A stretch of DNA of 63,247 nucleotides from Macrostomum lignano (Eukaryota). The position numbers and the translations under genes were made by a program. Below, one piece after another: positions 1,641 to 63,037 of the stretch (its first letter is position 1; each line of letters begins with the position of its first letter). The DNA is taken from the NCBI GenBank assembly GCA_002269645.1, contig NIVC01000235.1, forward strand, positions 1-63,247. The letters are read 5' to 3'. The notes beneath the pieces are model-generated. The model ran no database searches. It was not told the origin of the DNA and saw only the letters and a list, made by a program, of their open reading frames with translations.

Positions 1641-3329
1641 CAGCTAAACGAGTTGAGAGGAGGCAGATTAAGATTTAAGCGGCCAGGATTCTAGGCCACA
1701 CCCCTGGAATCGAGCTTGGGACGTCTGGGCCAACGGAGAAGATTCGAAAATGCTGTGTTTGCCACGGACGAGAGATAGATAAAAGAAGACGCAGCCCCAA
1801 GGCAGCAGTTTACAATCGAACTGTTTTCCAACGTGTTGTCGCCTTCGAACTTTTTTACAACATGGAAACTGCAGTAGGCGGGGCGGCCAAACGGGGAAGC
1901 AAGCGGGGGCGCCGGACAGACCGACGGCCAGAGACAGACAAGAAGACCGACAGAATGTTAATAGCGGGCGCATGCCATGCCCCATAGCTTTGGGAATGGC
2001 TACGAACGTTTGACTGGATACCATTTTTTCGGAAATACAACCCGACCCCCAGGGGAACGGCAGGAGAAGGCTGGGCAAAGATGGAGATCTTCATCTTTTT
2101 TTTAGGCGTTGCAGCTTTTTCGCGCTGGTTGGCAACTAATTAAGTGGTGGGTGAAGAACTAGAAGGGCAAAGGGGCGGGCGCAGAGCCGAGGGACACAGC
2201 AGGAACCCGTGACCGAGTTGGGGAGAAAAGAAAGGCTGAGGACAGTCAGCAGCTACCGGATTTCTGACAGTTGCAAGCCCCTAGTCCTGGAGTACAAGAT
2301 TTCCTGGGCACCGGTCCAAAACTTTCCTCTAAGGCAGCTCATTCTTTGCGTTACAGGACTTGTAATTAATCTAATTAATATTCAGCTTATAACTATTAAT
2401 ATAATGAAATGATACAGCCTGGGGCTGGCGTCAGAAAGATGCAAACTTCTAAATGAAACTCAGCAGCCAATCAGCGCGCGAAGGGGGTCAGAGAAAATGG
2501 GGTCGGTGATAGGTGACAAAATGCAATAGAGAGCTACGAGTACAAAGTCATAAAACTAAAATAGCAAAATAAACTACTTACACTGGTAAGTAAAAGTAAA
2601 ATAGTGCTGCGAACCACACCGCGCTGTAAATTAGTGAAGCAACTTGTTGGTTTGAAAGCATATTCACCCGATTTCACGCATACACACCAAGCAAACTGGG
2701 TACTTAATCCTTGAAATAGTTGGTGAGCAACCTGCTCTCAGAACTGTATAGATCAGAAAATACGCGTTAGTTTCTACTTGCAACGAGTAGCACAGTTGTG
2801 ATTTTCAACATTAAATAACCAAAATTAGGACTATTGTTTGTTAAGTTAAATAATACACGCATGTGGCTACTTAAATCAGTAGAACTAATAATACACGTAC
2901 GTATCTTTTATGAAAAAAATCTTTAAATCAGTGCAAATCGTTACATCGCTAAGCACTGCTGACAAGCAAAAATCAGAGAGCATATCTGAAATTAAAAATT
3001 CCAATCGCGAGAGCAATTTCGAGCGAACAATAAGTAAATATTATGGTGCTTATCTATTCGCAAAATTGACTCTCGAGTCCGTCAGTCAGCTAAACTAAAA
3101 CTTGCGGGCACACAGGAAGGACGTGTGGAAAGGAAAGAAAAGGGGAGATGGGAGAGGCAGCAGAGGCTGGGAAACCAATTTCACTTGGGTATTAAGTAAA
3201 AGATTTTACTAAGCAGGGATTTCGGAATTTGAGCAGATATAAGCTATAGTCAATATTATTTCTTACTGGAATTATTATTGTGCTACTTAAGCTCGAACTA
3301 AGTCTCATCAGTCCATGGGCTATTTAAGG

Positions 3330-3860
3330 ATAGCCGAGCCGCATCAAGGAATGGACAGGATTCCGATGGACAGAATCATAGCCGAGCCGCATCAGGGAAT
3401 GAACAGGATTCCGATGGACAGAATCATAGCCGAGCCACATCAGGGAACGGACAGGATTCCGATGGACAGAATCTTAGCCGAGCCGCATCAAAGAATGGAC
3501 AGGATTCCGATGGACAGAATCATAGCTGAGCCACATCAGGGAATGGACAGGATTCCGATGGACAGAATCTTAGCCGAGCCGCATCAAAGAATGGACAGGA
3601 TTCCGATGGACAGAATCATAGCCGAGGCACATCAGGGAACGGACAGGATTCCGATGGACAGAATCATAGCTGAGCCACATCAGGGAATGGACAGGATTCT
3701 GATGGACAGAATCATAGCTGAGCTGCATCAGGGAATGGACAGGATTCCGATGGACAGAATCATAGCCGAGCCGCATCAAAGAATGGACAGGATTCCGATG
3801 GACAGAATCATAGCCGAGCCGCATCAAAGAATGGACAGGATTCCGATGGACAGAATCATA
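3330..3860. repeat. 48-bp minisatellite, about 11 units
   Basis: Unit ATAGCCGAGCCGCATCAGGGAATGGACAGGATTCCGATGGACAGAATC; generates the 16-aa periodic ORF. Confidence 0.96.
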
Positions 3861-4360
3861 GGGGGAGGAGAGCAAAAGGGAGAGGAGAGGTAAAGAGCAC
3901 GAGAGAGAGAGAGAAGAGAGGGAGACAGAGAGGGAGACGGAGAGGGAGAGAGACGGAGAGGGAGAGAGACGGAGAGGGAGAGAGACGAAGAGGGAGAGAG
4001 ACGGAGAGGGAGGGAGACGGAGAGGGAGAGAGACGGAGAGGGAGAGAGACGGAGAGGGAGACGGAGAGGGAGGGAGACGGAGAGGGAGAGAGACGGAGAC
4101 CGAGAGGGAGAGAGACGGAGAGGGAGAGAGACGGAGAGGGAGACGGAGAGGGAGACGGAGAGGGAGACGGAGAGGGAGACGGAGAGGGAGACGGAGAGGG
4201 AGACGGAGAGGGAGACGGAAAGGGAGACGGAGAGGGATAGAGACGGAGAGGGAGACAGTGAGAGCAGTAGAGGATGGGAGGAGCAGGAGAGGGTGGGATG
4301 AGCAGGAGAGGGGACAGGGAGAGCAAGAGAGGGAGACAGGGAGAGAGGGAGAGAAACAGA
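3861..4360. repeat. GA-rich simple repeat (GAGAGACGGAGAGG variants)
   Basis: Purine-only tract with 12-16 bp periodicity. Confidence 0.93.
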
Positions 4361-6932
4361 TGAAATGCAGGGCCTTTTATGGTCTTGCATTTGCCAGCAG
4401 CAGCAAAAAGCCCGCGCTGAGAGCAGCTACTCACACGACCCGATAGTCAAAAACGAGGCGAGCCCGCAGATGCGACGACCTTCAGTTCGGCAGCCGGCTA
4501 CTTAGCCGGAGTCAAAAATACTTGTGTCTCTAGGCAATGGAGGGCACAATCGCATATATACGAGCCTTTCCCTTCGCTCCGCACAGCAAGCGGATACGCC
4601 TAAATGCGATTCTCGTGTCCATTCAATCGCCAACCCGCTGGGTTGCAAATGGACAATACGGAGGCTGAAGCGTTGCATAATTTTAAAAGTGCACCGCGCA
4701 CTGATGAAGAAGGGAGATGCCGGTCAGGGGGACACAAAATGAGACAAAACATCAGAAACCGGATTAGAAGGCTACAAAATTTCGATTTTCGATTCCCGAA
4801 ATAAATCCCACCAGTCGCCTATTTCGCTTTCCTTTTCTTGTTTTCTTCCGCTCCGCCTCTCTCGGCCGAGGATCTCTCTGAAGGATCGCCACAAGGACAA
4901 GTGCTAATCCCGCGCTCTAATGATAACCGAATGTACTTGCAACAAATAAGAGTCCCGGGTTCGATGGGGGTAAGACCCCCCTTCTTTGCAAAACCACTCT
5001 AAACATATAAAGTGCAAATCTGACTGGGGCGTGAGCAGCGAAGAGGCGCCGTGTCTGTACCTGGCTTTTGCCCCAAATTCCCCGGGTTTGGGTCCGCGCA
5101 CGCCCACAATAATTCGTGGAGGGGGGTCAGTGCACACACGGATTGAGCAATCAGCACCCACAAGAAGAGACCAACTGTGGCCTTGGCTTGCGGCAGTGCC
5201 AAAAGCGCCGCAACGATAAAATAAGTCAGTAAATATCTGTTTGAACACGCGCCAACGCTCAATAGTTTTGTTAACAATGAGTGCATTTTTCGGGGTTTTT
5301 TAATTTATGGTTAATTAGGACGGAGCGGACAGGTCTCGGGCCGGAGGTCCCGCAGTCTGTCAGTCACTCAATTTGCGCATTTCTGTCACGAAGCGGCGGG
5401 CAGTCTCCGCCGAGAGCGCCTGTTGTTTTCATTCACAATTTTTTTCTCCAAGCTTTGGTCAACCCGAGAAGCCATCGAGCCCGCCTAATCTCGGAGCGGG
5501 TTCACTGAAAAGTGCGAGCTGGTCCGACTGGCTGACCGGCTGAGAAATTCAGAAATTACAGCGCCGAGTCCACCGAGAGGAAAAATTGAAGTGGATCAAC
5601 TCCCCCCCCCCCGCTTCCCAGCATAAATTCCCAACTCTATATCCAAAAGCCCACTCGAGAAAAGCTTCCCCCATCCCATCGCTCACGAGGCTGGGGATGG
5701 CTGTGGCGAGGGTATGAATAAAAATAACGCGGAGGCTGGCCAAGCAGAAGCGACGGGAATCGACTGGAGATTTATCCCCATGCGGAGACACTTTTGAACG
5801 GCTGTATCGAACAGTGCGGCCGGCCCCGCCCTGGCCATGTCCTGGCAGACTCTGTGGCCCAGACTAATCCAACTAAGCCGAGACTGCCAAGGAAATCAAT
5901 AGTAGTCCGCTCGGGATCCAAAGCCGGCTTCAGTTCCCATCTGCCCGCTAATCAATGGTTCCTTCTGGTTGTCGCGCAGGCCATGGCAACTGCTGGCCAG
6001 GCACTTGGTAGTTAGGAGGAGGCGAAGAACTTTGTACCAATAAGTCGCAAACAGCGCAGAAGAAAACTAAAGTAGGCCTAAAGAGCGACACGAGGAATCG
6101 CTAAGTACACTTGCTCTGGCGAGGCAAAGGATGCGAAAAGCTTTAGGCTAAAAGCTTGGGCTTAGGGCGCATCAGTCATCCCGCGGCCAGTGAGCTAATA
6201 GACAGGTGCCTAACAAGCAGGCCTATCTACAATATCCGTTTCGTGACTGCACAGCTCAAAGCTGCTCAGCTCAACACAAGCAGAGACTGGCGCGAGGATC
6301 AGATTTCATTTAGCTAGCATGATCCCCGGATGATAAAAGAAACTCGAGGCGAGCCCCGGCAGGACTAAAGCTGGACTCTTCTTTAAAGCAGGCACAAATG
6401 CCTGGCAAGACTGGAAAGAGTGCGCAGGCCCGGCAAAAGAACCGGCTTCCCTACTTTTTTACGCCAGCGGCTGCTTTCAAAACGCGGTAAAAGCGCGGGA
6501 TTAATTGGAGACAAACTTCAGCTAGATGGAGCCGAGGGGGAGCTCATTGAAAAAAATCGAAAATCTACGCAGATAGGCAAAAATGGTGAAAGTCAATCAG
6601 GCGAATGGAAGACATCCCCCCGCCCGCCCGGTCCCCGGGGAAATACCGGCTAAAAAACTTGCAGACTGAGGGGACGAGAGGGTTGGAGCAAATCTGAAAA
6701 ATATGAAAACCCCCAGACTGAGCTGCGTCACTACCCGCCCGCAGGTGCAGGCGGAATTGCAGGGACTTGCGGATGCACCCGGTTTAGGCAAAGCATCTCA
6801 AACCGGAAACTCATAAAGTTAGCTAAAAAATCCTAGTCCAGGAAAAACAGTCAGAGTAACTATGACTGTACCTAGATAGTAAAAGCCTCGTCATCTAATT
6901 AGCATATCAGCAACGGGCAATCTGGGACTCAC

Positions 6933-8220: not shown

Positions 8221-10754
8221 TACCTTGCTTCAATTTCAATGCTTCAATTTACACTGCCAGAATACTGCACTGATTGCACTATTACGAGCGTACTAGACAA
8301 AGTGGGGTTCAAATAGAGGGCACAAGGAGCACCGAACCGCAATGCCTTAAGGTGACCGATTTTGTTCAGATTTTCTATTTTTTGCCGAAGCACCTAGCAA
8401 TGAAAATTAGTATTTTAATTGCGCGCAGCAAATTTCCAACGAAAACAACTTCAAGCCTGTCAATGGAAAAAATCGCTGCTTTATTGTAGCGACAAGGCTT
8501 CAGTAGAATTTTTTAGGCTTGATTGAAGCACTGAATCTCCAATTCCAAATAAACACAGTGCTTCTAAAAATAGCATCCTTTAGAGTAGGCCAGCAGCGGA
8601 AGCGGCAGTAACAGACATGGCGCAGCATCTCACACAGGCATCAACCAAGGCTAAAGGAGAGTGGCCAAGAGCCCTATACTAGATTCTGAACAAAACGCAT
8701 GAGCAAATGCCATATTCCGGCTATGATGAGGAAGACCGATATAAATATAGGAGGTTCTGGCAGTCTTGCCGGGGAAAATGCTGGAATTCTGCCTGACCTG
8801 GCTTGGCTTCAGCCCGCCCACGCAGCCCGGAACGGAATGCGGCAGACAAGAATGGAAATGGGGACTCAAATATTGCAGCAATGTCCAGTCGAAGCCAAGC
8901 TTGACCAGTTTCTCTCCTTAGCTAGCCCGCCATTTCCGTCCTTGGCGTCTTCTGCCTTTTCTAGCAACTGTGTTGCCCTGCCACGGCAGTCACAAAGAAG
9001 CAGGAAAGGAGCAGCAAGTACTCGCTACTTATACTGCCGGCTGAAAATGGAAGGCCAAGCCGTGTTTGCACAGACAGGGACAGGGGACAGCACGACGACC
9101 AGTTCAAGTGGCAAGCCGGAGCAGAAGGAAGCAGCAAAGGGTGGCGGCTATTCTTCTATATTTGCTGTCACTCATTTCTATGAGCAGGAGTCAAGCTAAG
9201 CACTGTTTTGTCTCAAGAAGCAAGTCAAATAGGGTCAGCTACAGACAGCACTGTATGCTTTACAGTTAATAGAATTCAATCTGGAATGCTCTAGTAATTA
9301 TTCTCAACTCTCAATGTTTTACATTGGATTCTAAGATTCTAATTTTATCTAACATTGAACTAGAATTCCATGTACCTTCAATTCTAAAAACACAACTGTT
9401 GATAGTTTAAAGCAAGAAATGGATATGCCTTTGTTAGCAAACATCATCAAAACTTTATAGGGTAAAACAAGCTAATAAAAACACATGTCATAAATAATCA
9501 AATTCTAATTAAAACTTGCATTATAAATAACTAAAGTATTAAAAATTGTTAAATTTTACTAATAATTTTAAACAAGCCATATATTTTAACCAGCAGATTG
9601 AAGACTGTAGTGCCCAGAATCAGCATGACAATCTTGCAGATCTTTCATATCTCCATATAGGATTTAAATGGCAACTGCCTGCATTACAAATGCTAGTATA
9701 GATGTCTTGGTCACTTTGTTGGGGCAGGTCTTCAATGCTGTCAATGAGATCAATACCATGGAGTCTATACAACAAGCCTCTAGCACTACTTATCCCAGGA
9801 GCAACAACTGACAATCTGGCACAATGTAGAACAAAAACAGGATCCAAAATGGGCCCTAACCAATGTCACTTTCTAAGATTGTAGGTTAAGGAGGGGTAAA
9901 CAGTGGAGAGCCTCAAGTTGTAAGTCAAATACAAGGCCAAAAACTGCAAGAGCATAAAAAATCATAAGAGCATGAAGAGCACAAAGCTATAGCAAAGCTA
10001 GGATGCACAAAAGAAAATAAAGCAAAAGCTATTATTAGATCTGCAAATTTGTCTATAGGTATGATAATAACAAAGATATGAATATATGTTTTCTAATCAA
10101 CTTTTGCAACTACAATATGGCCTTGATTGATTGAAACTAAAAGCTTAGATACAATCAAATGCAGGCTAGGAAACAACATAGAAATAGTATATTAACCGAT
10201 TATACCAATATTTTTATAATTACATATGCAATATAAATATGCCATGCTCTATTTTATTGTCTATATACATATATCAATATCCTAGATTACATGTCCAATA
10301 AACCTTGGTCCACTTGCTAGTCAATAATTGTAGTCATTTCCTAGACTATTCAAGTCCTAACTACCATGATCTATTCTCTAGTACATATTGATATTTATAT
10401 CAAATCTATTTTTAGACAATTTTTTGGCAATTGTAGTGACAAAGGTCTTTTATAAATTTAAATAAATAATGAAAAACAAATATAATTAGTGACTATTTTT
10501 TGTGAATAAGTAAATCAGTTTACATTTATAGACATAATAATCTATGATAGTCTATACTATAGTATAGATTATAAAAGGCCTAGTGTATACTAGGATAAAG
10601 TTTAGAAGTTGGGTTTAATCACAATTGTGATTATAATTTTATGAATTCACAATCATTTCTTCACAATAGTGATTTTCTTGAAATCTATTCATAAGGTTAT
10701 GAATTTCTACTTACTCTTTTATTTAAATTATAACTTTTTTATTTGATTTATTGA

Positions 10755-11815
10755 TACGGTGTTCACTACTCGTCTGTGAGTCGCATTCTCCAATGTCACA
10801 GCTGGTCAAAGATTTGTGCTAAGTGGGTACCACAAGAGCTGACAGAAGAACACAAAAAGCATGGGTGCAATGTTTGGCAGACAACTGGGCTGCATGGAAC
10901 GAGCTTGGTGATAAGAAGTTCAAGGAGCTTATAATCACAATGAATGAGACGCCGCTGCCAATGTTTAATCCATTGACAAAGCAGCAGTCGATGCAGTGGG
11001 GGCCAAAAGGATGGCTACCACACACAGAGGCCATGAAGTCAGCCTGGACCCAGAAGCCAGAACATCATGTGCATAGTGTGGTTCGATGTGCAAGGCATGT
11101 TACTGATTGATTACCTACCGCAAGGCCAGACAATCAATGCCAACTATGTGATTAACCAGCTCAAGCAACTGCGTGCTGCCATTCTATCCAAGTGCCAAAT
11201 CATGCATCAGAAGCCATTTATCCTTTGGGACAATGTGCATCCGCATGCTGCTACTTGCATTCGCGCCAAGGTAGAAGAGCTGGGCTTTTGTCAGCTAAGT
11301 CACCCAGCCTACAGGCCCAACCTCATGATTGCCAACTTCCATCTCTTCGGTCCAATGAAGTTACCAATGCGTGGGCAAGTTTTCACAACATTTCAGGAGG
11401 TCATTGATACCGCTAATGCATTGCTGCACTAGCTGGACTCCAGCTTCTAGAAGGCTGGGTTTGATAATCTGATTGAATGCTATCAGAAATATAGCATTTA
11501 ATGGTGAATATATGGAGTGCAACAGTGCTAGGCCAGACAGAAAGAATGACATCAGTGATAGTGATAATGATTGGTAGGGATCAATGGCAGCTGGAACTTT
11601 GGTATAATGATTTATAGTGAAGGGACACTGATTGATTGCAACATGTTTTAAATTATTGCTTTTTGTTCCACTTGACACTAACAAAACATAATAATGTGTT
11701 GCCTTACTGTTTTTGACCAACAGTTTTAGAATATTACCCAGAAATTTCCCTTGTTATCGTTGCATTAAAAAGTTTGCCTATAGGAAATCTAGAAACTTTT
11801 GCAATACCCCTTGTA
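10755..11815 (+). mobile_element. Degenerate mariner (DD34D-type) transposon, 5' end missing
   Basis: AKWVPQELT (WVPHEL motif), IITMNET (first D lost), LWDNVHPH, HPAYRPNLMIANFHLF (YSPDL motif decayed); frameshift near 11065; right TIR-like …CTAGAAACTTTTGCAATACCCCTTG followed by TA at 11814-11815; left TIR not found. Confidence 0.88.
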
Positions 11816-19200: not shown

Positions 19201-22200
19201 TAGCTATGGTCTCAATTTCACAGGTTTGATTGATACAAACCCAATAAATATTGAAATATCACTGACGCAAACAATTTGCAGGTCTACGCAGAGCATTTGA
19301 CGGTAAATGCGCGACTCATAAATCAAACCAAAAAAATATTTTCTCAAGTTTTGACCCCAGTTCATTCCTGCTCAAGCTGCTGCTGGCTGTTTGAAAAATC
19401 GTTTCATGACTGCCCCATCGCACTGTTATGCAGATTAACTGTAAAGTATTTTTAGAAGCAACGCAGAAAGCCTCCCGCTGTGCCGTGTTGACTGTTTATA
19501 CCTCATCTACCCCGAATAAGCTGCCTGATTGGACACAGGTGCAAATAATCGCAAAAAAATCTGCTTGCAGAAGAAATCTGTCCAGTGCGATCCCTCCCGA
19601 GACAGACAGAATAAATAAACACAAAATTAGGGCGCAAACTGGTTTAAGAAAGCTAAGACCAGATTTCGGTAATAATTACAAAAAGTGGTTAGAACTCCCT
19701 GGGAAAAGTCTTCTAGAAACTTTGGAAAGCGGTCATCGCTATTGCCCACCAGAGTCGATGCTAACAAAGCGTGCGTCGGTTTGGCTCTCTGTTCAACCCT
19801 AGTGTGTATTGAATAAAACCGTACTGACATTGATCTTTTTTACCATGGATAGCCAAACACGACCCCAAATTCACTCCTACAATGCTTCTACAAACCGCAC
19901 ATTGCTATCCGATTACACGCCCCATTGTCTACATGCACTTTCCAAAGAAAAATGCATTTTAAGGCACCCAGACGCATTTTAGCAGCCAGTCCAAACCTCT
20001 CTACTCTGCAGTGCCTCGGCCCAACTCGTCGGGCTCGGCTGCTGCCAACCGGTACCGGCAGAAGCGCCAGCCCGACCCGGTGCTCGGCCAGCGGGTGCCG
20101 GAGTTCGGCTGGACGCCGTCGCCCGATCTTCTGCGCCAGGCGCGCAGAGGCCCCTCATCGGCGGCCTTCGAGCAGCAGTCGTACCTACCCTCGCAGGGCC
20201 AGGGTGTCAGGGAGGACAGCCCGTTCAGGGCCGGTCGAAGCCATGGAGGTCGCGGAGCTCACGGAGATCATGGAGGCTTCGGAGGCCACGGCGGAGGTCC
20301 CGGAGGTCACGTAGGTCATGGAGGCCACGGCGGCGGTCACGGAGGCCACGGCGGCGGTGGCAGGCAGCGCTCGTCGGCCATGCTCCGTCTAAACAGCACG
20401 GGCGGAGGCGCCGAAGATCCGCCGGCGGAGGTGCCGGTGGCGTTCAATAATAAGCAGTACAACACGCCCATCAACATGTACTCCAAGCAGAATGTGGCCA
20501 CGGCTTTTGAGGGCCAGACGGGCATCGCGCTCGGCCCGGGGTGAGTAAAGCCCTGCAGTGAGTCACGACTGAGTGCATACTGGGTCCAAATGACGTCTCG
20601 GGATGGTTTAGCAATTCAGAGGCTTGTATTACTTGCAATATTCGGAACCTTTTGCAATAAAACGGTCAAACTTGACTGAGGGATTCAGCCTGTAGAGCGG
20701 AATAAAAAATCTAGTCAAATTTTATTATACCTGGGCATGGCAGTCAGTGCGCCAGTCAGATTGCGAGAAAACTGTCAATAGCTTCCGAAATGTCTGGATG
20801 TATTTTTAAATCAACACATTCTAAGACTACTGCCTGGTTGGAGTCACGCCAGAGGACCAATTATTTTGTATAGCCAAAAGAACACCGAGCATAAGGTAGA
20901 ATGCCAAACTTTTCAACTGAAGCTGAAGCCAACAACGCGGCTTCCCGCGGGGCATCTACTTTTTGACCATAGACAGCAATCACGCAGAAAGCCCCTTTTC
21001 TGCCCTAGAAAGCCTGAATGATTAATATATTCTCACAATTGTCTATGGTAGAGGCCAAATCTGCGACTAAATCAAACTTACTTCACCCAGAGGTAAGCAA
21101 ATTTAGATCAAATATTATACATACACTGGGCCACTCATTAACCACTTATGTGGCCATAGAAGCTAATGTAAAAAAATTTTGCAACTCGCGACAGCGCGAA
21201 AATCAACTACTGAACTTGTTTTCCCCAGTAGTATCGTCACTTTCTCAGTAGTCTCTGCAGTGCATGCACCATTCTTTGTTTGATTGAGTAGCTTTTTATT
21301 TAATTCATGAAAAGCTCTATCAAATCAAACTCAAAAATAGCGTTTATGTCCCTAAGCTATACTAAGCTGTCGGTTTTTCGCACAAGTGACGAAAAACAGC
21401 GGTCGCACTTTCCCTTAAGACTTAAGACGCACTTAAGACGTACCGCAATACAAAGTGGTCTATCTAGAGAATATAAGATCCATGCTTTAGACTAAATACA
21501 TTTCACTTCGGCCCAAAAACACAGTTAAATGGTATACTAAACAGACTGCTGTCTATGGTCAAATAGTAAGTGCCCGTGAAGCTGCATTATTGGCAATTCA
21601 GCTGCAGCTTCAAACTTCGGCATTCTACCTAATGCTTGGAACATAGCCAATGCGCAGTACGAAGTTTGAATTTCTAATGCCTTCGTTTGTCTGGAACACT
21701 GGCAAACAAATCTTCTTATTCCTATTTATTTCTTATTCCTGAATTAAACAAACTCGAAAGATGTAGATCTTTTCTGAAAAATTATAACAACGTCAAGAAC
21801 ATCAGTGTCTGTCTTCACGTCATCTGAAGCTTTATTCCTTGAAGGAGTTCCGCTTCACAGGCACCGTTTTTGAGAAGAGATGGGATCCATCACGCACTTG
21901 TGTGAGCAGCATTTGAAGTCATAGAAACAATTCCAGCCTTTCCCAAGACAATACATTCTGCAGGCACTTGAGCAGCCTGCAATCATAAATATGATATGGT
22001 TATTCTGTTAATTTTCACTTAGCAATTTATTAATTACGAGCGTAGTCAATTAGTTGAGTAAAAAAACTCAAGTTTAGCAAAACTCACCGAGAAGTGTGAG
22101 CAGCACAAACAGAACTAGCAGCAGGCTCTTCATCTCGGATCTTGTGATCGTGCGGTCCTCTTAGTGAGTAAAGTTAAACTGGAGCAGCGTGTAGCTGGTG

Positions 22201-24748: not shown

Positions 24749-25798
24749 ATTATTGTACCCTTTTGTCTATGGTTTCCGGCATTCATACTTGCGGTAACAA
24801 TTTAATTGTTTGTCGGCTTTTTTCGATTGTTGCCGGATTTCAGACGAATGTATTTGGCTATCAAAACAAGGAACAACAATAGCAACAAATGTTTTCGTCC
24901 TGCAGTTTACGAAGGGACGTTCGGTCAAAGTATGCGCGAATAGTTTGCATGTCGTCCTCGGAAATAGCTTCGTATTTGTCTACCTTCTCGACGTCCTTCC
25001 ATGTACATTTTCACCATGGCGACAAGAACGCCATTGCAACGCTTGAAGGCTTCTCCGGTAATGATGTTCACCTGGCGATTAACGGACGGGGATTGCAGGT
25101 GGCGTTGAATAGCCGCACGAAAACAGATGAGAGACTTTGGCGCATAGTAAGTTCCATCCTGCTTTCGAAGGGATGAATAGAAAAGCCTCAGATAATCGTT
25201 CAAAAATCGATCCGGAACACGCTCAAACTCCTGGCAGAGCCCCTTCTCGTTGAGGAACTGTCGGAACCTTGCCACGTGAAGCTTCCGTTGCGTCTCGGTC
25301 GATTTCGGCACTGAGTCACTCTCAAGTCGGTCCAACATTTCCAGATCTTCGCTATACCTAGCTCAGGCAGCCCGTTGGAACTGGACGACGCATCCAGGTT
25401 GTCCATCTCCAGAACGTAGCGCGTGCTCGACTCCCGGGTGACAAAAGCCAACTCGTCCGTGGAGAGTCCGCATATTTCTCCGCCAGGAATGTTTGCGTAG
25501 CGAATCATAGCTACTTTTCCTATTTGCACTCCGAATAGGAGAATTAATTCAAGCTCAAAATCAACTTGAGAATAAACTCATGGCAGCCAGGCTAGCTGTC
25601 TTCACTGTCCTTTAAATTTGCCATAAACGATTAATTATCTCTACAACCCTTTCATTTAGAGAGCAACTAAATTTGCCATAGACGATTGATTATCTCTACA
25701 ACCCTTTCAAAGCGCATTCCGGCAACAATCGCATTTCATACTCAGCATCCGCACTATGTCTGGGCCATAGACAAGGGAAGTCAAAAGGGTACAATAAT
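24749..25798 (-). mobile_element. Crypton/DUF3504-like tyrosine-recombinase remnant B with terminal inverted repeats, catalytic half deleted
   Basis: ATG 25508 MIRYANIPGGEICGL…; SEDLEMLDRLESDSVPKST…LRLFYSSLRKQDGTYYAPKSLICFRAAIQRHL…; after a frameshift near 24990, ISEDDMQTIRAYFDRTSLRKLQDE; perfect 17-bp IR 24749-24765 / 25782-25798 plus GTCTATGG 24765 / CCATAGAC 25765. Confidence 0.8.
25613..25709. repeat. 42-bp direct duplication upstream of the remnant B ORF
   Basis: 25613-25654 and 25668-25709, 2 mismatches; the second copy contains CCATAGAC. Confidence 0.85.
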
Positions 25799-43473: not shown

Positions 43474-45746
43474 GAGCTCACTGAGAGGCTTATTCTCTGG
43501 CGGCTGCTCTCCTGCGAGCTGACGGCGATGCCCCTCAGCAATAATCAGCACGCCTTCCGTACCGGGAGGTCGACTGACAGCGCCCTGCATGCGATTGTCG
43601 AAAAGATTGAACGGGCGGTACTGGGTGACGGTTACGCCCTGGCTCTCTTTCTTGACATTGTTGGCGCCTTCGACAACGTTATCTTTGAAGCGTTTCAGAG
43701 GGCCCTTCAAAATCGCAAAGCTCATGCTACCCTCATACGGTGGATCATGTACATGATCTCCAACCGTACGGTCACTGCCCAACTTCTTGGGCAAACTGCC
43801 TCCACCAGAGTCTGTAAGGGTGGACCCCAAGGCGGAGTCCTCACCCCGACGCTCTGGAACCTGGTCATGGACGCTCTTCTGAGTGACTCCCGACCTGACC
43901 CCGTCTTCAAAGTCGGGTATGCTGATGACGTCACGGCCATTGTGGCAGGACCGTCTCCCAGCACGCTCAGGGATCTGATGCAGAGCTTTATCCGCAAAGC
44001 AGAATCCTGGGCCAATGACAATGGTTTGGAACTCTCTGAGCCCAAAACCGTTGCCATTATGTTTACCAGCAGACTACGCTGGAACATACGTCCTCTGCAG
44101 CTCTACGGCAGAGATATTGCCTTCGCGCACCAGACCAGATGTCTCGGGGTCACACTTGACCACCGGCTCAACTGGTCCTTCCACGTGAAAGCAAAAGCTA
44201 AGCGTGCCTCAGCCATCCTGGCCCAGCTCCGACGAGCACTTGGCACTTCTTGGGGTCTATCCCCAAAGCGGCTTTGGTGGATCTATACTTCCGTAGTTAG
44301 ACCTGCCATTACGTACGCCTCTGTTGTCTGGGTTAGCGCTACCCAGGTCAAAAGCCATGCAGACCTGCTCAACACGATCCAAGGCAGAGCGTGTAGGCTC
44401 ATCTGCAACGCCACCAGGTCCACGCCCTTTGCTGGCATGGGGGCCTTTCTTAATCTTCCGCCTCTTGACCTCTTCATCAGGGGTGAGGCGGCTAGAACGA
44501 CGCGGCGTCTAATTGATGCCGGCGTCAAATTCATTTACATGAGAGCACCTGCTAAGCGGAACCTTGTCCCGCATAGCGATCTGTGCCTCAACTTTCTCAA
44601 CGAGTGTCAGGCCAATCGCGTCTTCACCGATGGCATTGCCTCAACGCTCAACCTGAGACAGCGCTACTCCGTAGCTATCGACTGGTATGATTCACTCGAC
44701 TCCGTAGCTATGACCATTGGAACCCTGGTGAGCTTCATTGCTACACCGACGGTTCTAAGCAGTCAGCCAACACCGGCTTTGGTGTTGGAATCTTTCTGAA
44801 CGGGAGGGTCATCGCTACCCACGCTCAATACACTGGGGTCAACTCCAGTGTTTTCCAAAATGAAGTTCTGGCCATCAGCTCCTGCACTGCAGAGCTTCTC
44901 GCCACTGGCGTTACTGGTAAGAACATCATTTTCCATTCGGACAGCCAAGCTGCCTTGCACGCCATCAGTGGCTGCAGCACCAACTCTGCTACAGTCCTTG
45001 ACTGTATCAAACTCCTCAATGTGTTGGGTTCCGCCAACAAAATTACCCTTAAGTGGGTTCCGGGGCATGTGGGGATCCGAGGAAATGAGTTGGCTGACAC
45101 CCTTGCAAAAGTTGGTGCCTCCGGCTCCTCTCTCGGCCCCGAACCTCTTGTCCCGATTCCTGGCTGTGTCATCGACTCGCGCATCAAAGCGTGGATCAGG
45201 ACTCAGCACCGCTCGACTTGGGCGAACCGCACGAACTGCAGGCAATCCAGAGGCGCTGTCCCTCAGCCCTCTCACCAGCTCCGGAAGCTCCTCTTGCGCC
45301 TCTCGCGCAGAGACATCCGGGCTGCCACCATGACCCTCTCTGGTCACGGCTGCTTCTCCAGGCACCAGTACCTGCAGGGCAACGCCACCAACGCCACCTG
45401 TAGTTTCTGCAACTCAGGTGACGAAACCGCTGAGCATTTCGTCAGCATCTGTCCCGCCTTCACGCGGGCCAGACTCACTTACCTCGGGCCACACACATCT
45501 ATTACTGAAGCGTGCAAACCCGAAAACTTTAATCAGCTCATGCGCTACCTTCGGGCCACCCGCAGGGCTGAACTCTCCTTTCCAGAGAGCACCATAGCTG
45601 CTGGCGACACTGGGGGACCTCCCTGGGCGGCGCCAACCCTCCGTCCATAGCGACGCGTCGGCCGTTCAGGGACTAGCGGAATGGGCGCCCGCGCCTTCCC
45701 GCTGTGTCCCCTCCGGGACAGCCCTGCAGCTAAGTCAAGTAAGTCA
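43474..45746 (+). mobile_element. 5'-truncated non-LTR retrotransposon (RT + RNase H + Cys/His knuckle; I/R1/LOA group)
   Basis: QHAFRTGRST, FLDIVGAFD, GGPQGGVLTP, GYADDV; after a frameshift near 44700, YTDGS…EVLAI…SDSQAAL…WVPGHVGIRGNELAD; CSFCNSGDETAEHFVSICP; tail TAAGTCAAGTAAGTCA; 13-bp TSD AGAGCCGTTTGAA at 43461-43473 and 45747-45759. Confidence 0.95.
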
Positions 45747-57785: not shown

Positions 57786-59257
57786 AAGCCTTTTCAAAAT
57801 TTCAATATGCATTGCTAGTGCGAATATTTTTAGAATTTTCATTGCATATTTTGTTTTTTTCTTGTCCTTTAGAAACCCCATCACTTTTCTAGTGCACACC
57901 ATGGACAGCTAAACTTTAAAGTACAAGGACGCTACAGTCTCAAGCCGTGCAGATTTTGCTGGAGGCCGCCGGGTTTCGCTGCAAAACGCACTGGTTGGAA
58001 GTTTCCAGATTATTTTAGCACTGTAATCCCAATATCTCAGGTTTGGCCATAGACAATTCAATCGAGAAAACTTAAAGAACTTTGCGTGCTTGCCGGTCTC
58101 CGGTAGCAATTCATGAAAAATAGTTTCATAAATTTGTGATTGCACATTGGAAAGAGTACATATTTGCTTCATTTTTAGTTCGGAACCGGAAGTCCAGAAG
58201 TTGAGATATTGGGAGTTTAGTGCTCAAAAACTGGAAAGCTCCTGTCTCGTTAATTTACACGAGTTTCGAGTGCAGTAACCTGCTGTAGAAGTAATCGGCC
58301 ATGTTTCACACTAGTACACCTTAATCATACCTGTAGTAACCTCCATAGAATTTGTTTACGCATTTCGTCCTCTTGTCTGCACTTCTACCCTGTCTACACA
58401 CTGCCCATGTCTGTTCAACTTGGCTAACCCTTGCTTATCTAATCTAACCTTGCCTCATTCTGATTGGCTCTCACTTCGTCTCTCTCTCTCTCTCTGTGAC
58501 ATTTTTCCATTTCTCTCTCTTTACAACCTTCTGACTGAGGCCAATGCTGCATTCTTATCAACACCGCCACCCCTCCCTCAATTAAAACTGTTATAATCAG
58601 ACATCACATTACAATCCTTAATTATGGTTTTCGCAATTATCAAACATTATTTGTAATCAGTTCAAAAATGCCTATTATTAATATTATACAGTTAAAATAT
58701 CGATAATAATTTTATAAAGTGTACTTTTCCGCATTCCAGTGACCCCCAGCACCATCCAGGGCCGCATCATGAAGTCCGGTTCCGCCTACTGAGGCTGTCA
58801 ACCTGAAGCTGGCCCCTGAAGTTGGCCTGAAGTGCAAAAATGCACTTACTGATGACTCTTTATAGCAAAACAACTACATGTACCTTTACACTCGGCTTGC
58901 TAAGTTGTCACTATTTGTTTCTAATCTAAATCTTAAATTAAAAGTACTTGCTGTAGTTTGCGGAATGCTGCTATTGAAAACTGTTTCACTGGAACTATTT
59001 GCTTTGAAGCAAGTCAATAAGAAAGAGTGCCACTTTTAACCACAGATTTACTTGTTGATGCCGGATTTTACTGATGCTCTGCATGTCATGGCTGCATTCC
59101 AGAAGCTTTCGATTATATACTGCTGTTTCTGATAGCTGCATCAGCAGTTTTCTTCTGATTGGATTGCACCGATTCAAATTTCACTCCTCAGCATCTTGTC
59201 TCATTATCTTTCTTTCTGGGATGCATGTATTTTGTATATTAAGTGTTGGAATTATTA

Positions 59258-60432
59258 GATCATGTGTTGGAATCAGTAGGTCACGTGTTGGAATCAGCAG
59301 GTCACGTGTTGGAATCAGCAGATCATGTGTTGGAATCAGTAGGTCATGTGTTGGAATCAGTAGGTCATGTGTTGGAATCAGTAGGTCATGTGTTGGAATC
59401 AGTAGGTCACGTGTTGGAATCAGCAGGTCATGTGTTGGAATCAGTAGGTCATGTGTTGGAATCAGTAGGTCATGTGTTGGAATCAGCAGGTCATGTGTTG
59501 GAATCAGTAGGTCACGTGTTGGAATCAGCAGGTCATGTGTTGGAATCAGTAGGTCATGTGTTGGAATCAGCATGTCATGTGTTGGAATCAGCAGATCATG
59601 TGTTGGAATCAGTAGGTCACGTGTTGGAATCAGCAGGTCACGTGTTGGAATCAGCAGATCATGTGTTGGAATCAGTAGGTCATGTGTTGGAATCAGTAGG
59701 TCATGTGTTGGAATCAGTAGGTCATGTGTTGGAATCAGTAGGTCACGTGTTGGAATCAGCAGGTCATGTGTTGGAATCAGTAGGTCATGTGTTGGAATCA
59801 GCATGTCATGTGTTGGAATCAGCAGATCATGTGTTGGAATCAGTAGGTCATGTGTTGGAATCAGTAGGTCATGTGTTGGAATCAGTAGGTCATGTGTTGG
59901 AATCAGCAGGTCATGTGTTGGAATCAGTAAGTCATGTGTTGGAATCAGCAGGTCATGCGTTGGAATCAGTAGGTCATGTGTTGGAATCAGTAGGTCATGT
60001 GTTGGAATCAGCAGGTCATGTGTTGGAATCAGTAGGTCATGTGTTTGGAATCAGTAGGTCATGTGTTGGAATCAGTAGGTCATGTGTTGGAATCAGTAGG
60101 TCATGTGTTGGAATCAGCAGGTCACGTGTTGGAATCAGCAGGTCATGTGTTGGAATCAGTAGGTCATGTGTTGGAATCAGTAGGTCATGTGTTGGAATCA
60201 GTAGGTCATGTGTTGGAATCAGTAGGTCATGTGTTTGGAATCAGTAGGTCATGTGTTGGAATCAGTAGGTCATGTGTTGGAATCAGCAGGTCATGTGTTG
60301 GAATCAGTAGGTCATGTGTTGGAATCAGCAGGTCATGCGTTGGAATCAGTAGGTCATGTGTTGGAATCAGCAGGTCATATGTTGGAATCAGCAGGTCATG
60401 TGTTGGAATCAGTAGGTCATGTGTTGGAATCA
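59258..60432. repeat. 21-bp minisatellite family C, array 2
   Basis: Same unit and orientation as 51832-52452. Confidence 0.96.
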
Positions 60433-60627: not shown

Positions 60628-61577
60628 TCAGCCGACCTTCATCATCTGGTAGAGATTCTGGATCTGCTTCATCGACATTGTGCCTGAGTGCCGCTTCCTG
60701 GCCAGGTGCTGCTGCAGCAGGCGGCGCAGCAGCTGTTCCCATTCCTGCTGCTGGAGAGTGGGAGAGAAGCTGACGTTGATCATTCAGGTTGTAAAGATCT
60801 TACTGTGCTACTCTCGAGTAGCGAATAGAGAGAATTTTTTCAAGCAGCAGAACGATGCTTCTTGCGAAACATTTGCTAATCAGTAATTATTAATTTGCTT
60901 CAGTTTGCTATTTTCTATTGCATATAGCGGCTGGCTCAACAAAAGGATTTACAATAAATTCTGATATTTTTTCTAAGGCTCATTAAAATAATTATACATT
61001 CTATTGTAATAATAATAATTCATATGCAGGATAGACGGGAGGTGAGGCAATTCTGCTCATTCCGCTCAGTCCCCGTGAGCACATACTCATACAAGCGCGC
61101 CAACACTAGCGCAGGCACGCTAAACGATTTGGAAGATGCGATTCAAGACATGAGATTTCAGCTGATGAATTACGGGGAATGGAATTTTGGCGATAGGAGT
61201 TCTTCCCCTTTCTCCTCCGAAGGAGGAGTTCCACTCGTATGATAAAAATCCTCTGTCTGCAATTGATTTCTCAGTGTCTATATTCACTACTAGCTAGTAG
61301 GCGGGTCTGCGCATGGCTGCGATTTCTTTCTTTCTTTCATGGGTGCGATGCAGATGTTTCATACAAATCTTACGCTAATGCGCCTGTCCTCATCATCCAG
61401 GGTCGGGGCGGCAAACGCCTCATCGGCAGCTGCGCCAGCTTCATCCTCGGCGGCCTCCGGCATGGACTCGGGCGCCAGAGCGGCTTCGGCCTCGGCAACG
61501 GACTTTGAAGGCGCGGCCGCGGCAGCGAGAACCAGCGGCAGCAGCAGCAGCAGCGAGCGGCAGGTTGGCTTCAGCAT
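60628..61577 (-). CDS. Secreted neuropeptide / peptide-hormone precursor (108 aa, 2 exons)
   Basis: Exon 61577-61374 signal peptide MLKPTCRSLLLLLPLVLAAAAAP plus acidic spacer; donor |GTAAGA; acceptor CTTCTCTCCCACTCTCCAG|; exon 60750-60628 QQEWEQLLRRLLQQHLARKR-HSGTMSMKQIQNLYQMMKV-G*. Confidence 0.78.
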
Positions 61578-62039
61578 TGCCGATCTCGAATTGGGGATTT
61601 GGGGGTCTGTGGCTCAGCGTGGTTCCGAGTTCGAATCGCGTCAGGATCAATCGCACCAAAACACAACACCATCGTTCCAGTCTGCATCACCGCCCAGCTT
61701 CAGCAAGTCTCCCCTAATCGATACTTGGAGATGCAAAAGAAAAGCAATTTGGGAAGTGGAGCTCATTTCCAACAGAAGCAATGGTAATTGATTGAATCCG
61801 CTGAAAGGGGCAACTGTTTGATTCTCTTTGATCTTCTCTATCGGCTGAGCAGCTGGATCGACCTTCACTTGTAGTTTTACTACTTCGGATCCACAGGCCT
61901 TCCAGATTTTTTTCTTTTTTTCTTTTTCCAGATTTTGTCTGCACATTGTTCCATCTCAATTATACCAAGTCTAAAATATCCCTCGTTCCTTATCCCTTAT
62001 CTCTACCCCTATTTTCGATCCCTTTATCCCTATTTTGAA

Positions 62040-62290
62040 TCTCTTATCCCATATTCCTGATCCCCAATCCCATATCCATTATCCCATATCCCATATCCCA
62101 TATCCCATATCCCATATCCCATATCCCTATCCCATATCCAATATCCCATATCCCTTATCCCATATCCCTTATCCCATAGCCAATATCCCATATCCCATAT
62201 CCCATATCCCATATCCATATCCATATCCATATCCATATCCCATATCCATCCAATATCCATATCCATTATCCTATATCCTTATCCTATATC
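62040..62290. repeat. (TATCCCA)n / (TATCCA)n microsatellite
   Basis: Read directly. Confidence 0.93.
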
Positions 62291-63037
62291 CCTTATACTT
62301 TATTCCTGGTTCGCTGTCTCCCTCCTGTTTCCATTGCAGCATCACTAATGCGACCCCTAGAGCACCTCCGACCTACAAGCCACGCAGATTCCAAATGCAA
62401 ATCTTTGATTCGGTCTGTCCGAACTTTGAACAGTGGAGCACCGGCATGCCCGCAGCTTGTGCAGTCAAAGCGAACATTTCAAGAAGAGAGTAATTGGAAT
62501 TCTGGCTGGCAGAATTCGTTGCTGAAGCTCTTCTTCGTGAATGTTACCCGAGGTGCCAAGCCCCAAGCCCCCAGGCGCGTCTGTGTGTGCTTTGCAAAGT
62601 CGAATAAAAGACCTCCTGTCTCAAAGACTTACCAGGAAAGTTTAACCCGTCAAGAATTACGATTTCTTCAGAGCTGCTTGAGAAGACGGGGATCCTGACT
62701 CTCGGATTCTTAGCAAATTCTTCGGAGCAGAAGAGAGAGACAGAAATGCCTCTCAATTTCAGCTTTTATGCGGAATTTTAGAGACGTCAGTCGGCTCCTC
62801 TGGCTGACCAATCAGAGGCCAGTTGGGTCCGTCGGGTTTTCAGTTTTCCTTCTGCTAAAAATGTGAAGTCGACTTCGGCGCCACCTAATCTGTCACTGTC
62901 GGTAGGTTTTAGCAGCAAATATTGACTGGGACCGCACCGTTCCAGCCCTCCAGCTGCTCAGCTGATGCGGCTGCTTAGCGAAGGATGAACTGCTGCTCGT
63001 CTTGGAGCGAATTATGAGGGCGAAAAATGAGAGGATG

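Follow-up and report, generated by a model that had tools for sequence, protein, structure and literature searches.

A two-exon gene for a predicted amidated peptide prohormone in Macrostomum lignano, possibly a diverged relative of the PDF/cerebrin family

Introduction

The 63,247 nt stretch of Macrostomum lignano contig NIVC01000235.1 (assembly GCA_002269645.1) that was analysed here, referred to below as the window, carries on its minus strand a two-exon gene at positions 60628-61577. The question raised by this locus is whether the gene encodes a peptide prohormone and, if so, to which family that prohormone belongs. We conclude that this is a genuine prohormone-type gene encoding a 108-residue secretory prepropeptide, with a single predicted amidated peptide of 19 residues at its C-terminus. 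Comparison of its sequence and gene structure with those of other spiralians leads us to lean towards the view that it is a strongly diverged flatworm representative of the PDF/cerebrin-type prohormones. The gene model itself is already known and is unnamed; the functional call as an amidated peptide prohormone is new.

Gene organization and transcript evidence

The gene has the following features.

61577, minus strand: start codon ATG, with three in-frame stops in the preceding 75 nt
61577-61374, minus strand: exon 1, 68 codons, ending AGC and followed by the donor GTAAGA
61373-60751, minus strand: intron, 623 nt, GT..AG, phase 0, GTAAGA...CTCTCCAG
60750-60628, minus strand: exon 2, 40 codons plus TGA
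60597-60592, minus strand: AATAAA polyadenylation signal, 31 nt 3′ of the stop codon

The intron ends in a pyrimidine tract and CAG (CTTCTCTCCCACTCTCCAG) and has a GC content of 0.41, compared with 0.69 in exon 1 and 0.59 in exon 2. GC at codon positions 1/2/3 is 0.72/0.45/0.78, which resembles the other coding exons of the window. The position of the AATAAA so close to the stop codon supports exon 2 as the terminal exon, and disfavours use of a potential donor at AAG/GTCGGC (the slash marks the splice site), where splicing would remove the C-terminal Gly. This alternative splice had been raised in a first-pass annotation of the window, and we found no evidence for it; the transcript-based coding sequence (CDS) ends at the same TGA.

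The 108-residue protein is 100% identical over its full length to the GenBank entry ‘hypothetical protein BOX15_Mlig002683g1’ of M. lignano (PAA78161.1, PAA80048.1 and PAA87389.1; UniProt A0A1I8GGK8). The GenBank gene model is present on three contigs of the assembly with a span of 950 nt in each, the NIVC01000235.1 copy being 60628-61577. Transcripts assembled de novo or with guidance from the genome, together with TransDecoder, were the only basis for annotating this assembly (PMC5730564), and because the annotation is purely transcript-derived, the annotated CDS provides indirect RNA evidence for the 61374/60750 junction. The two-exon gene is thus real and transcribed, with the splicing as modelled resting on the transcript-derived CDS. 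The first-pass annotation had described the gene as hidden and liable to be missed by annotation pipelines, which proves not to be so, as the exact two-exon, 108-residue model is in both GenBank and UniProt. It had also pointed out that the second exon is absent from a list of open reading frames (ORFs); this is correct, in that exon 2 alone forms a 51-residue ORF (60628-60783) that falls under a 60-residue cutoff, but the public gene models do include it. A 150-residue antisense ORF overlaps exon 1. Neither the peptide string nor the identifier Mlig002683 was found in the text of the literature searched.

In UniRef the protein is named ‘EF-hand domain-containing protein’. We detected no EF-hand or other Pfam domain, and the name has the look of an error of automatic annotation, for which the acidic DDED stretch described below may be responsible.

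Over 2 kb, which takes in the exons, the intron and 500 nt flanks (the gene lying at 10001-10950 in each extracted stretch), there is 100% identity among the three genomic copies. The only difference between them is the register of a TATCCCA microsatellite. Two of the three also agree in their neighbouring genes, one lectin-C-like and the other encoding 94 residues. A gene present three times fits with what is known of the DV1 line, whose large chromosomes are duplicated and whose assembly is redundant (PMC5730564).

Approximately 146 nt upstream of the ATG there is a pyrimidine tract ending in AG (TTGCTTTTCTTTTGCATCTCCAAG, 61724-61745, minus strand). About 39% of M. lignano genes are trans-spliced (PMC5730564), and this tract could be a spliced-leader acceptor, although that is pure conjecture.

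The precursor and its predicted processing

The spliced product is 108 residues long and Cys-free, and can be represented as MLKPTCRSLLLLLPLVLAAAAA / PSKS...AFAAP / TLDDEDRRIS // QQEWEQLLRRLLQQHLA / RKR / HSGTMSMKQIQNLYQMMKV / G / stop, where the double slash is the exon boundary. Its segments are as follows.

61512..61577, minus strand: predicted signal peptide MLKPTCRSLLLLLPLVLAAAAA, residues 1-22, with K3 and R7 in the n-region, a hydrophobic core and an Ala-rich c-region
61407..61511, minus strand: Ala/Glu-rich acidic spacer from the translation, residues 23-57, predicted to be disordered (pLDDT <50)
61374..61403, minus strand: exon-1 terminal motif TLDDEDRRIS from the translation, residues 59-68, followed by the GT donor; DDEDRR is shared with Mactra
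60700..60750, minus strand: propeptide helix QQEWEQLLRRLLQQHLA, residues 69-85, which may correspond to the helix of the PDF-associated peptide
60691..60699, minus strand: tribasic RKR, residues 86-88, predicted prohormone-convertase site, aligning with the KR of PDF/cerebrin precursors
60634..60690, minus strand: predicted mature peptide HSGTMSMKQIQNLYQMMKV, residues 89-107, 19 residues between RKR and Gly
60628..60633, minus strand: Gly108, the presumed amide donor given established PAM biochemistry, and TGA

All of the elements listed in the first-pass annotation (signal peptide, acidic spacer, phase-0 intron, RKR, 19-residue peptide and Gly before the stop) are thus found on the minus strand at the positions given there, and its central proposal of a two-exon prepropeptide with a single predicted C-terminal amidated 19-mer describes an architecture that is present. 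The features generic to amidated prohormones are a signal-like N-terminus, an RKR immediately before the peptide, and Gly108 directly before TGA. The signal peptide call is heuristic, and is based on a core of 15 residues with a Kyte-Doolittle 9-mer mean of up to 3.2. By a rough estimate, a dibasic site together with a C-terminal Gly is expected by chance in dozens of the short secreted ORFs of one proteome, so the processing motifs alone do not prove a neuropeptide.

A single-sequence AlphaFold model, whose confidence is low overall (mean pLDDT 59.5), has two helices, at residues 69-90 and 95-107, with pLDDT of about 65-83 overall and 73-83 for the first of them. The helical segment proposed earlier upstream of the cleavage site therefore recurs in the model, although as a prediction only. 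The predicted peptide has an isoelectric point (pI) of 9.7, a net charge of about +2 and a mean hydrophobicity near zero, and its helical hydrophobic moment is not above that of shuffled sequences (p about 0.1). For amidated HSGTMSMKQIQNLYQMMKV the calculated monoisotopic mass is 2253.089 Da ([M+H]+ 2254.096).

On entry to the secretory pathway the precursor would be cut by signal peptidase near residue 20-22, and by analogy with general prohormone processing a PC1/3- or PC2-type convertase would cleave after Lys87-Arg88 of the RKR. Peptidylglycine alpha-amidating monooxygenase (PAM) would then turn Gly108 into the amide, and the released product would be HSGTMSMKQIQNLYQMMKV-NH2, with the upstream helical propeptide being a by-product or a chaperone-like segment. 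Expression of the gene may be neuronal; Mlig002683 appears in none of the expression tables consulted.

Comparison with spiralian PDF/cerebrin genes

The layout of the M. lignano precursor is co-linear with that of 19 spiralian PDF/cerebrin precursors, which have a helix, KR, a single C-terminal peptide of ~17-20 residues and Gly. We compared its gene structure with those of six loci, comprising two bivalves, one nemertean-like metagenome contig and three marine metagenome loci that represent two distinct genes and were recovered by scanning metagenome contigs with the family alignment. Within the extracted stretches these lie at 3001-3644; 3001-6538; 631-732 and 2820-2957; 1102-1203 and ~4010-4150; ~2105-2245; and 3127-3273 and ~4001-4141. 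The junctions compare as follows, with slashes at the exon boundaries where intron sequence is given.

Mactra (ACF0H5_018188): ...SSIDDEDRR, phase-0 intron, DIANLAARILKIVV...KR NAGTVDSLYNLPDLLGVG RR
Ylistrum: ...SPDQKERQ, phase-0 intron, EIMVLAARIIKIAM...
Nemertean-like metagenome contig: ...NSIDDKERQ/GT...tttcag/EIMASAAKILRIAL...
Marine metagenome gene: ...SMDDEERQ/GT...ag/EIASLAARILKVTL...
Second marine metagenome gene: ...LGDEERQ/GT...ag/EIAALAIKIVRIVF...
M. lignano: ...TLDDEDRR-IS, phase-0 intron, QQEWEQLLRRLL...RKR HSGT...NL...KVG

At all six spiralian cerebrin/PDF loci there is a phase-0 intron immediately after [EK][ED]R[QR] and before the exon that encodes the helix. Exon 1 at these loci consists of the signal peptide and a segment ending in [EK][ED]R[QR], and exon 2 encodes [ED]I..A.[KR]I[LIV][KR].. 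followed by KR and n.GT[VI]DSL.NLP..[VI]G. The intron/[EK][ED]R[QR] criterion was derived in the present analysis and is not a published one; an intron in this position could serve to mark orthologues among PDF/cerebrin genes. The four metagenome contigs carry cerebrin-type genes that are unannotated.

The M. lignano gene shares several of these characters. All six residues of DDEDRR are the same in M. lignano and Mactra, and the M. lignano intron has the phase 0 of the family. Exactly 8 residues separate R[QR] from the [IL][ILV][KR] motif of the helix in the five family genes in which this was measured (5/5) and also in M. lignano, whose LLRR corresponds in spacing to the ILKI, ILRI, IIKI or IVRI of the five cerebrin genes. 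Composition-preserving shuffles put such a motif this near to the intron at frequencies of 1e-3 to 1e-5, although these figures overstate the significance because the motif was defined post hoc, after the match had been seen, and acidic-then-basic stretches are common in prohormones. This evidence is independent of the peptide sequence. The motif, its spacing, the phase and position of the intron, KR, xxGT, NL and V-Gly occur in one order, and this is hard to ascribe wholly to chance.

Sequence and profile comparisons

As a family set we used 14 PDF/cerebrin precursors from nemerteans, brachiopods and phoronids (supplement of Thiel et al. 2021). A profile search with these precursors retrieved the cerebrin prohormones of the bivalves Mactra antiquata and Ylistrum balloti together with a nemertean-like fragment. 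When the family alignment is compared with the flatworm protein using hhalign, KR-HSGTMSM--KQIQNLYQMMKVG is aligned end to end with KRn.GtvDS--L.NLPDl..VG, at P = 0.0024. With hmmsearch (filters off) the flatworm protein scores 4.9-14.1 bits, varying with the family members included in the profile, and depending on the profile its hidden Markov model (HMM) score is equalled by composition-preserving shuffles at p values from <0.0002 (<1 in 5000) to 0.04. The flatworm protein gives no signal with profiles of DH44/ELH and DH31, two further families of class B ligands (p 0.4-0.7). The sequence alone, then, suggests a similarity that is specific to PDF/cerebrin but falls short of significance.

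At such a distance the profile test is of low power and low specificity. Drosophila PDF, a true distant member of the family, scores 9-10 bits against the spiralian profiles, no better than the flatworm protein. The full-length profiles are also unspecific, since the combination of a signal peptide, an acidic spacer and KR is sufficient to let an unrelated precursor score 10-13 bits, as described below.

The mature-peptide consensus of the family is n-x-G-T-[VI]-D-S-L-[YW]-N-L-P-[DN]-[LF]-x-x-[VI]-NH2. The flatworm peptide keeps Gly3, Thr4, Asn-Leu and the terminal Val-Gly of the cerebrin consensus and departs from it elsewhere. We have therefore not filed the gene as a member of PDF/cerebrin, but only as a probable, highly diverged relative with the same precursor logic.

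Several observations weigh against any such relationship. Asp6, Ser7 and Leu-Pro-Asp/Asn, all nearly invariant in spiralian cerebrins, are missing from the flatworm peptide, which can be aligned only with an insertion of two residues. The intron is displaced by two codons (6 nt) 3′ of the family position, and the acidic-then-basic motif preceding it could be a generic feature of prohormones. The hhalign comparison has a probability of only 12%, and the better-balanced profiles give the lower scores (4.9-6.7 bits, p 0.01-0.04). The unrelated precursor referred to above is a planarian myomodulin-like one, which with its 10-13 bits against full-length profiles matches the flatworm protein, although it has no comparable score against the C-terminal profile. 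A word-indexed search of 5.8 billion proteins at E <= 10 returned only the protein itself and an older, frameshifted model of it (UniProt A0A1I8FCY7) that adds nothing independent, and an exhaustive HMMER search of 1.84 billion representatives at E <= 0.001 returned the same two matches. No homologue was found by scanning JGI metagenome contigs with the 108-residue protein. Neither the whole precursor nor the exon-2 product matches Pfam at E <= 10, the pigment-dispersing hormone (PDH) family being among those covered. Finally, the three genomic copies provide no evidence of selection because they are identical, including in the intron.

The resemblance to molluscan cerebrin noted in the first-pass annotation is thus upheld in part. 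The phase-0 intron, DDEDRR and the helix spacing add to it, while the profile scores are weak and the peptide is without the Asp6 and Leu-Pro-Asp of the family.

Alternative explanations

The most serious alternative to a diverged PDF/cerebrin prohormone, although one that we consider appreciably less probable, is that the gene encodes a Macrostomum-specific neuropeptide or other secreted signalling peptide precursor, processed in the same way but unrelated to PDF/cerebrin, with the common features being generic. The failure of the protein, HMMER and metagenome searches to find a homologue would be expected in this case, as would profile scores within the range of an unrelated decoy precursor, the low hhalign probability and a peptide that does not have Asp6 and LPD; flatworm neuropeptide complements are, moreover, reported to be rich in lineage-specific peptides (PMC13551398). 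What is left unexplained is the identity of DDEDRR, an intron of the same phase within two codons, the 8-residue spacing and the co-linear KR, xxGT, NL and V-Gly, together with the presence of a signal with PDF profiles and its absence with those of DH44 and DH31. An improbable alternative is a non-neural gland peptide, with a role in either host defence or reproduction (seminal fluid), and with a signal sequence, an acidic propiece, KR and an amidated helical peptide. Amidated defence peptides, such as those of frogs and antimicrobial peptides of invertebrates, use the same precursor architecture, and the M. lignano peptide is basic and predicted to be helical. The absence of homologues also fits, being typical of fast-evolving Macrostomum secreted proteins according to one study (PMC7336406). 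However, the hydrophobic moment does not exceed that of shuffles, and a mean hydrophobicity close to zero and a low net charge also disfavour an antimicrobial role. As a weaker point, two M. lignano studies of the germline and reproduction (PMC5816591, PMC7336406) do not list the gene identifier in their supplementary files, which may be incomplete.

We consider it very unlikely that the peptide is another type of class B ligand, either secretin/PACAP/glucagon-like or a CRH/DH44/ELH-like peptide of 41 residues (ISQQEW...MMKV-NH2) released at Arg65-Arg66 with the RKR left uncut. The HSGT start does resemble the HSxGT of glucagon and secretin, the Leu/Arg-rich amphipathic helix resembles CRH/DH44 peptides, and 41 residues is the length of CRH. 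Against this, there is no Pfam match at E <= 10, with the glucagon/secretin and corticotropin-releasing factor (CRF) families covered, and scores with the DH44/ELH and DH31 profiles are the same as those of shuffles, so that the CRH/DH44 and DH31 readings are rejected for want of a profile signal. With a nemertean DH44/ELH profile built from three sequences, for example, the M. lignano protein scores -0.3 bits and 38-50% of shuffles score as high. A survey devoted to the question found no secretin/PACAP-type peptides in protostomes, 41 flatworm transcriptomes included (PMC7251081). RKR, moreover, is strongly dibasic, and all of the aligned cerebrin genes have their cleavage site at the equivalent KR. 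The resemblance to secretin-family peptides suggested in the first-pass annotation does not hold up, given these results and a length of only 19 residues. It is just as implausible that the gene is a transcribed but non-functional or mis-modelled ORF, with spurious coding potential in a GC-rich segment flanked by repeats. The gene is indeed flanked by minisatellite arrays that generate many long spurious ORFs, an antisense ORF of 150 residues overlaps exon 1, and neither a homologue nor any sign of selection was found. But such an ORF would not account for the codon-position GC periodicity, the canonical splice sites, the stop codon followed by AATAAA, and the coherent signal-peptide and prohormone layout, nor for a transcript-derived annotation with exactly the same CDS or for the co-linearity with cerebrin genes.

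Relation to known peptide systems

The closest likeness of the M. lignano precursor is to the spiralian PDF/cerebrin precursors, i.e. that of Mactra, the ‘cerebrin prohormone-like’ protein of Ylistrum and those of nemerteans, brachiopods and phoronids (Thiel et al. 2021), which are small, 75-100 residues long, and have a signal peptide. Common to the cerebrin genes and M. lignano are the acidic-basic motif of exon 1, the phase-0 intron nearby and the amphipathic [IL]L[KR] helix 8 residues on, followed by KR and a single peptide of ~17-19 residues with an xxGT start, NL, and an aliphatic residue plus Gly. The layout differs in the spacer, which in M. lignano contains a 35-residue Ala/Glu-rich insertion, whereas the spacers of cerebrin/PDF precursors are shorter and have no counterpart to it. 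It differs also at the C-terminus, where the M. lignano Gly directly adjoins the stop codon, while the Gly of cerebrins precedes basic residues.

The PDH/PDF precursors of arthropods (one peptide) and PDF-1/2 of nematodes (a few peptides), represented by PF06324, have amidated 18-22-mers that lie at the C-terminal end of the precursor, follow a PDF-associated peptide and are ligands of class B G protein-coupled receptors (GPCRs). The M. lignano protein differs from these in having no Pfam match and in the absence of the N-terminal NSE(L/I)INS motif. We note that nematode PDF-1 is likewise without Leu-Pro and ends in Val-amide. The vertebrate secretin/glucagon/PACAP peptides have only the His-Ser-(x)-Gly-Thr start, amidation and a presumed helix in common with the M. 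lignano peptide; members of that superfamily are 27-44 residues long with Phe6-Thr7-Ser/Asp8, and the M. lignano peptide, with 19 residues, is without these. The CRH/DH44/ELH-type peptides share with M. lignano a Leu/Arg-rich amphipathic helix and an amidated aliphatic C-terminus, the M. lignano product being a 41-mer if the RKR is uncut.

Possible receptor and significance

If the likely family relationship holds, the peptide would act on a PDF-receptor-like class B GPCR and raise cyclic AMP. The phylum does contain a candidate receptor, since Fasciola hepatica has a single GPCR of the secretin family and this is most similar to PDF receptors (E = 9e-46; PMC6114109). Our own protein search with this Fasciola receptor at 1e-20 retrieved only Fasciola proteins, and this cutoff is too strict to bear on M. 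lignano.

According to a 2026 review, flatworm neuropeptide inventories are incomplete, with several ancestral protostome families missing, and PDF is not part of the polyclad repertoire that it lists (PMC13551398). A mollusc-centred survey that includes flatworm data has PDF/cerebrin clusters for molluscs, annelids, nemerteans and insects only. We found no flatworm PDF-type peptide in the literature searched, although the M. lignano gene may already have been described under an ‘npp’ (neuropeptide precursor) name. It is about an even call whether the M. lignano gene is the first PDF/cerebrin-type gene to be recognised in Platyhelminthes and encodes the missing ligand of the retained PDF-receptor-like GPCRs, with its ancestry visible only in the propeptide motif, the helix spacing and the intron position.

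The gene supplies a candidate ligand that can be synthesised (19 residues, amidated, 2253.09 Da) and tested in M. lignano, a model with RNA interference, in situ hybridisation and transgenesis. More generally, where a mature peptide has diverged beyond the reach of sequence searches, the orthology of a neuropeptide can still be recovered from its intron position and propeptide motifs. Should the PDF link hold, the gene would provide the first candidate for a PDF-type ligand to be traced in Platyhelminthes, of moderate interest for comparative neuroendocrinology and unsurprising in kind; if it fails, the gene is one more lineage-specific candidate prohormone, already present without a name in public annotation.

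Other features of the window

The content of the window is typical of the M. lignano genome, with many minisatellites containing long spurious ORFs, a non-LTR (long terminal repeat) retrotransposon and exons of a TRP-like channel. A 21-bp minisatellite (unit GTGTTGGAATCAGTAGGTCAT) forms two arrays, of which one begins only ~200 nt 3′ of the prohormone gene; these arrays give spurious ORFs of 130-330 residues in several frames. The features outside the prohormone gene are as follows.

59243-60432: GTGTTGGAATCAGTAGGTCAT array, ~57 copies with ~94% identity
51690-52600: second array of the same minisatellite
62045-62296: TATCCCA 7-bp microsatellite, ~37 copies, ~470 nt upstream of the start codon
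33134-37479, minus strand: TRP-like cation channel, several ORF-sized exons, weakly matching Ion_trans (E = 3e-4) and PKD_channel and containing the pore-region motif ...LINMLIAMMSHSFEDIQ
43528-45650, plus strand: non-LTR retrotransposon remnant, with reverse transcriptase (RVT_1, E = 1.6e-21) followed by RNase H (E = 8e-7)
24925-25338, minus strand: 137-residue ORF with a borderline match to the QRICH1 domain (27.7 bits against a cutoff of 30.8)
20011-20544, plus strand: Gly/His-rich 177-residue ORF with a DUF4749 match at its end, exactly at the cutoff (28.7 bits)

The last two of these, the ORFs with QRICH1 and DUF4749 matches, may be exons of real genes.

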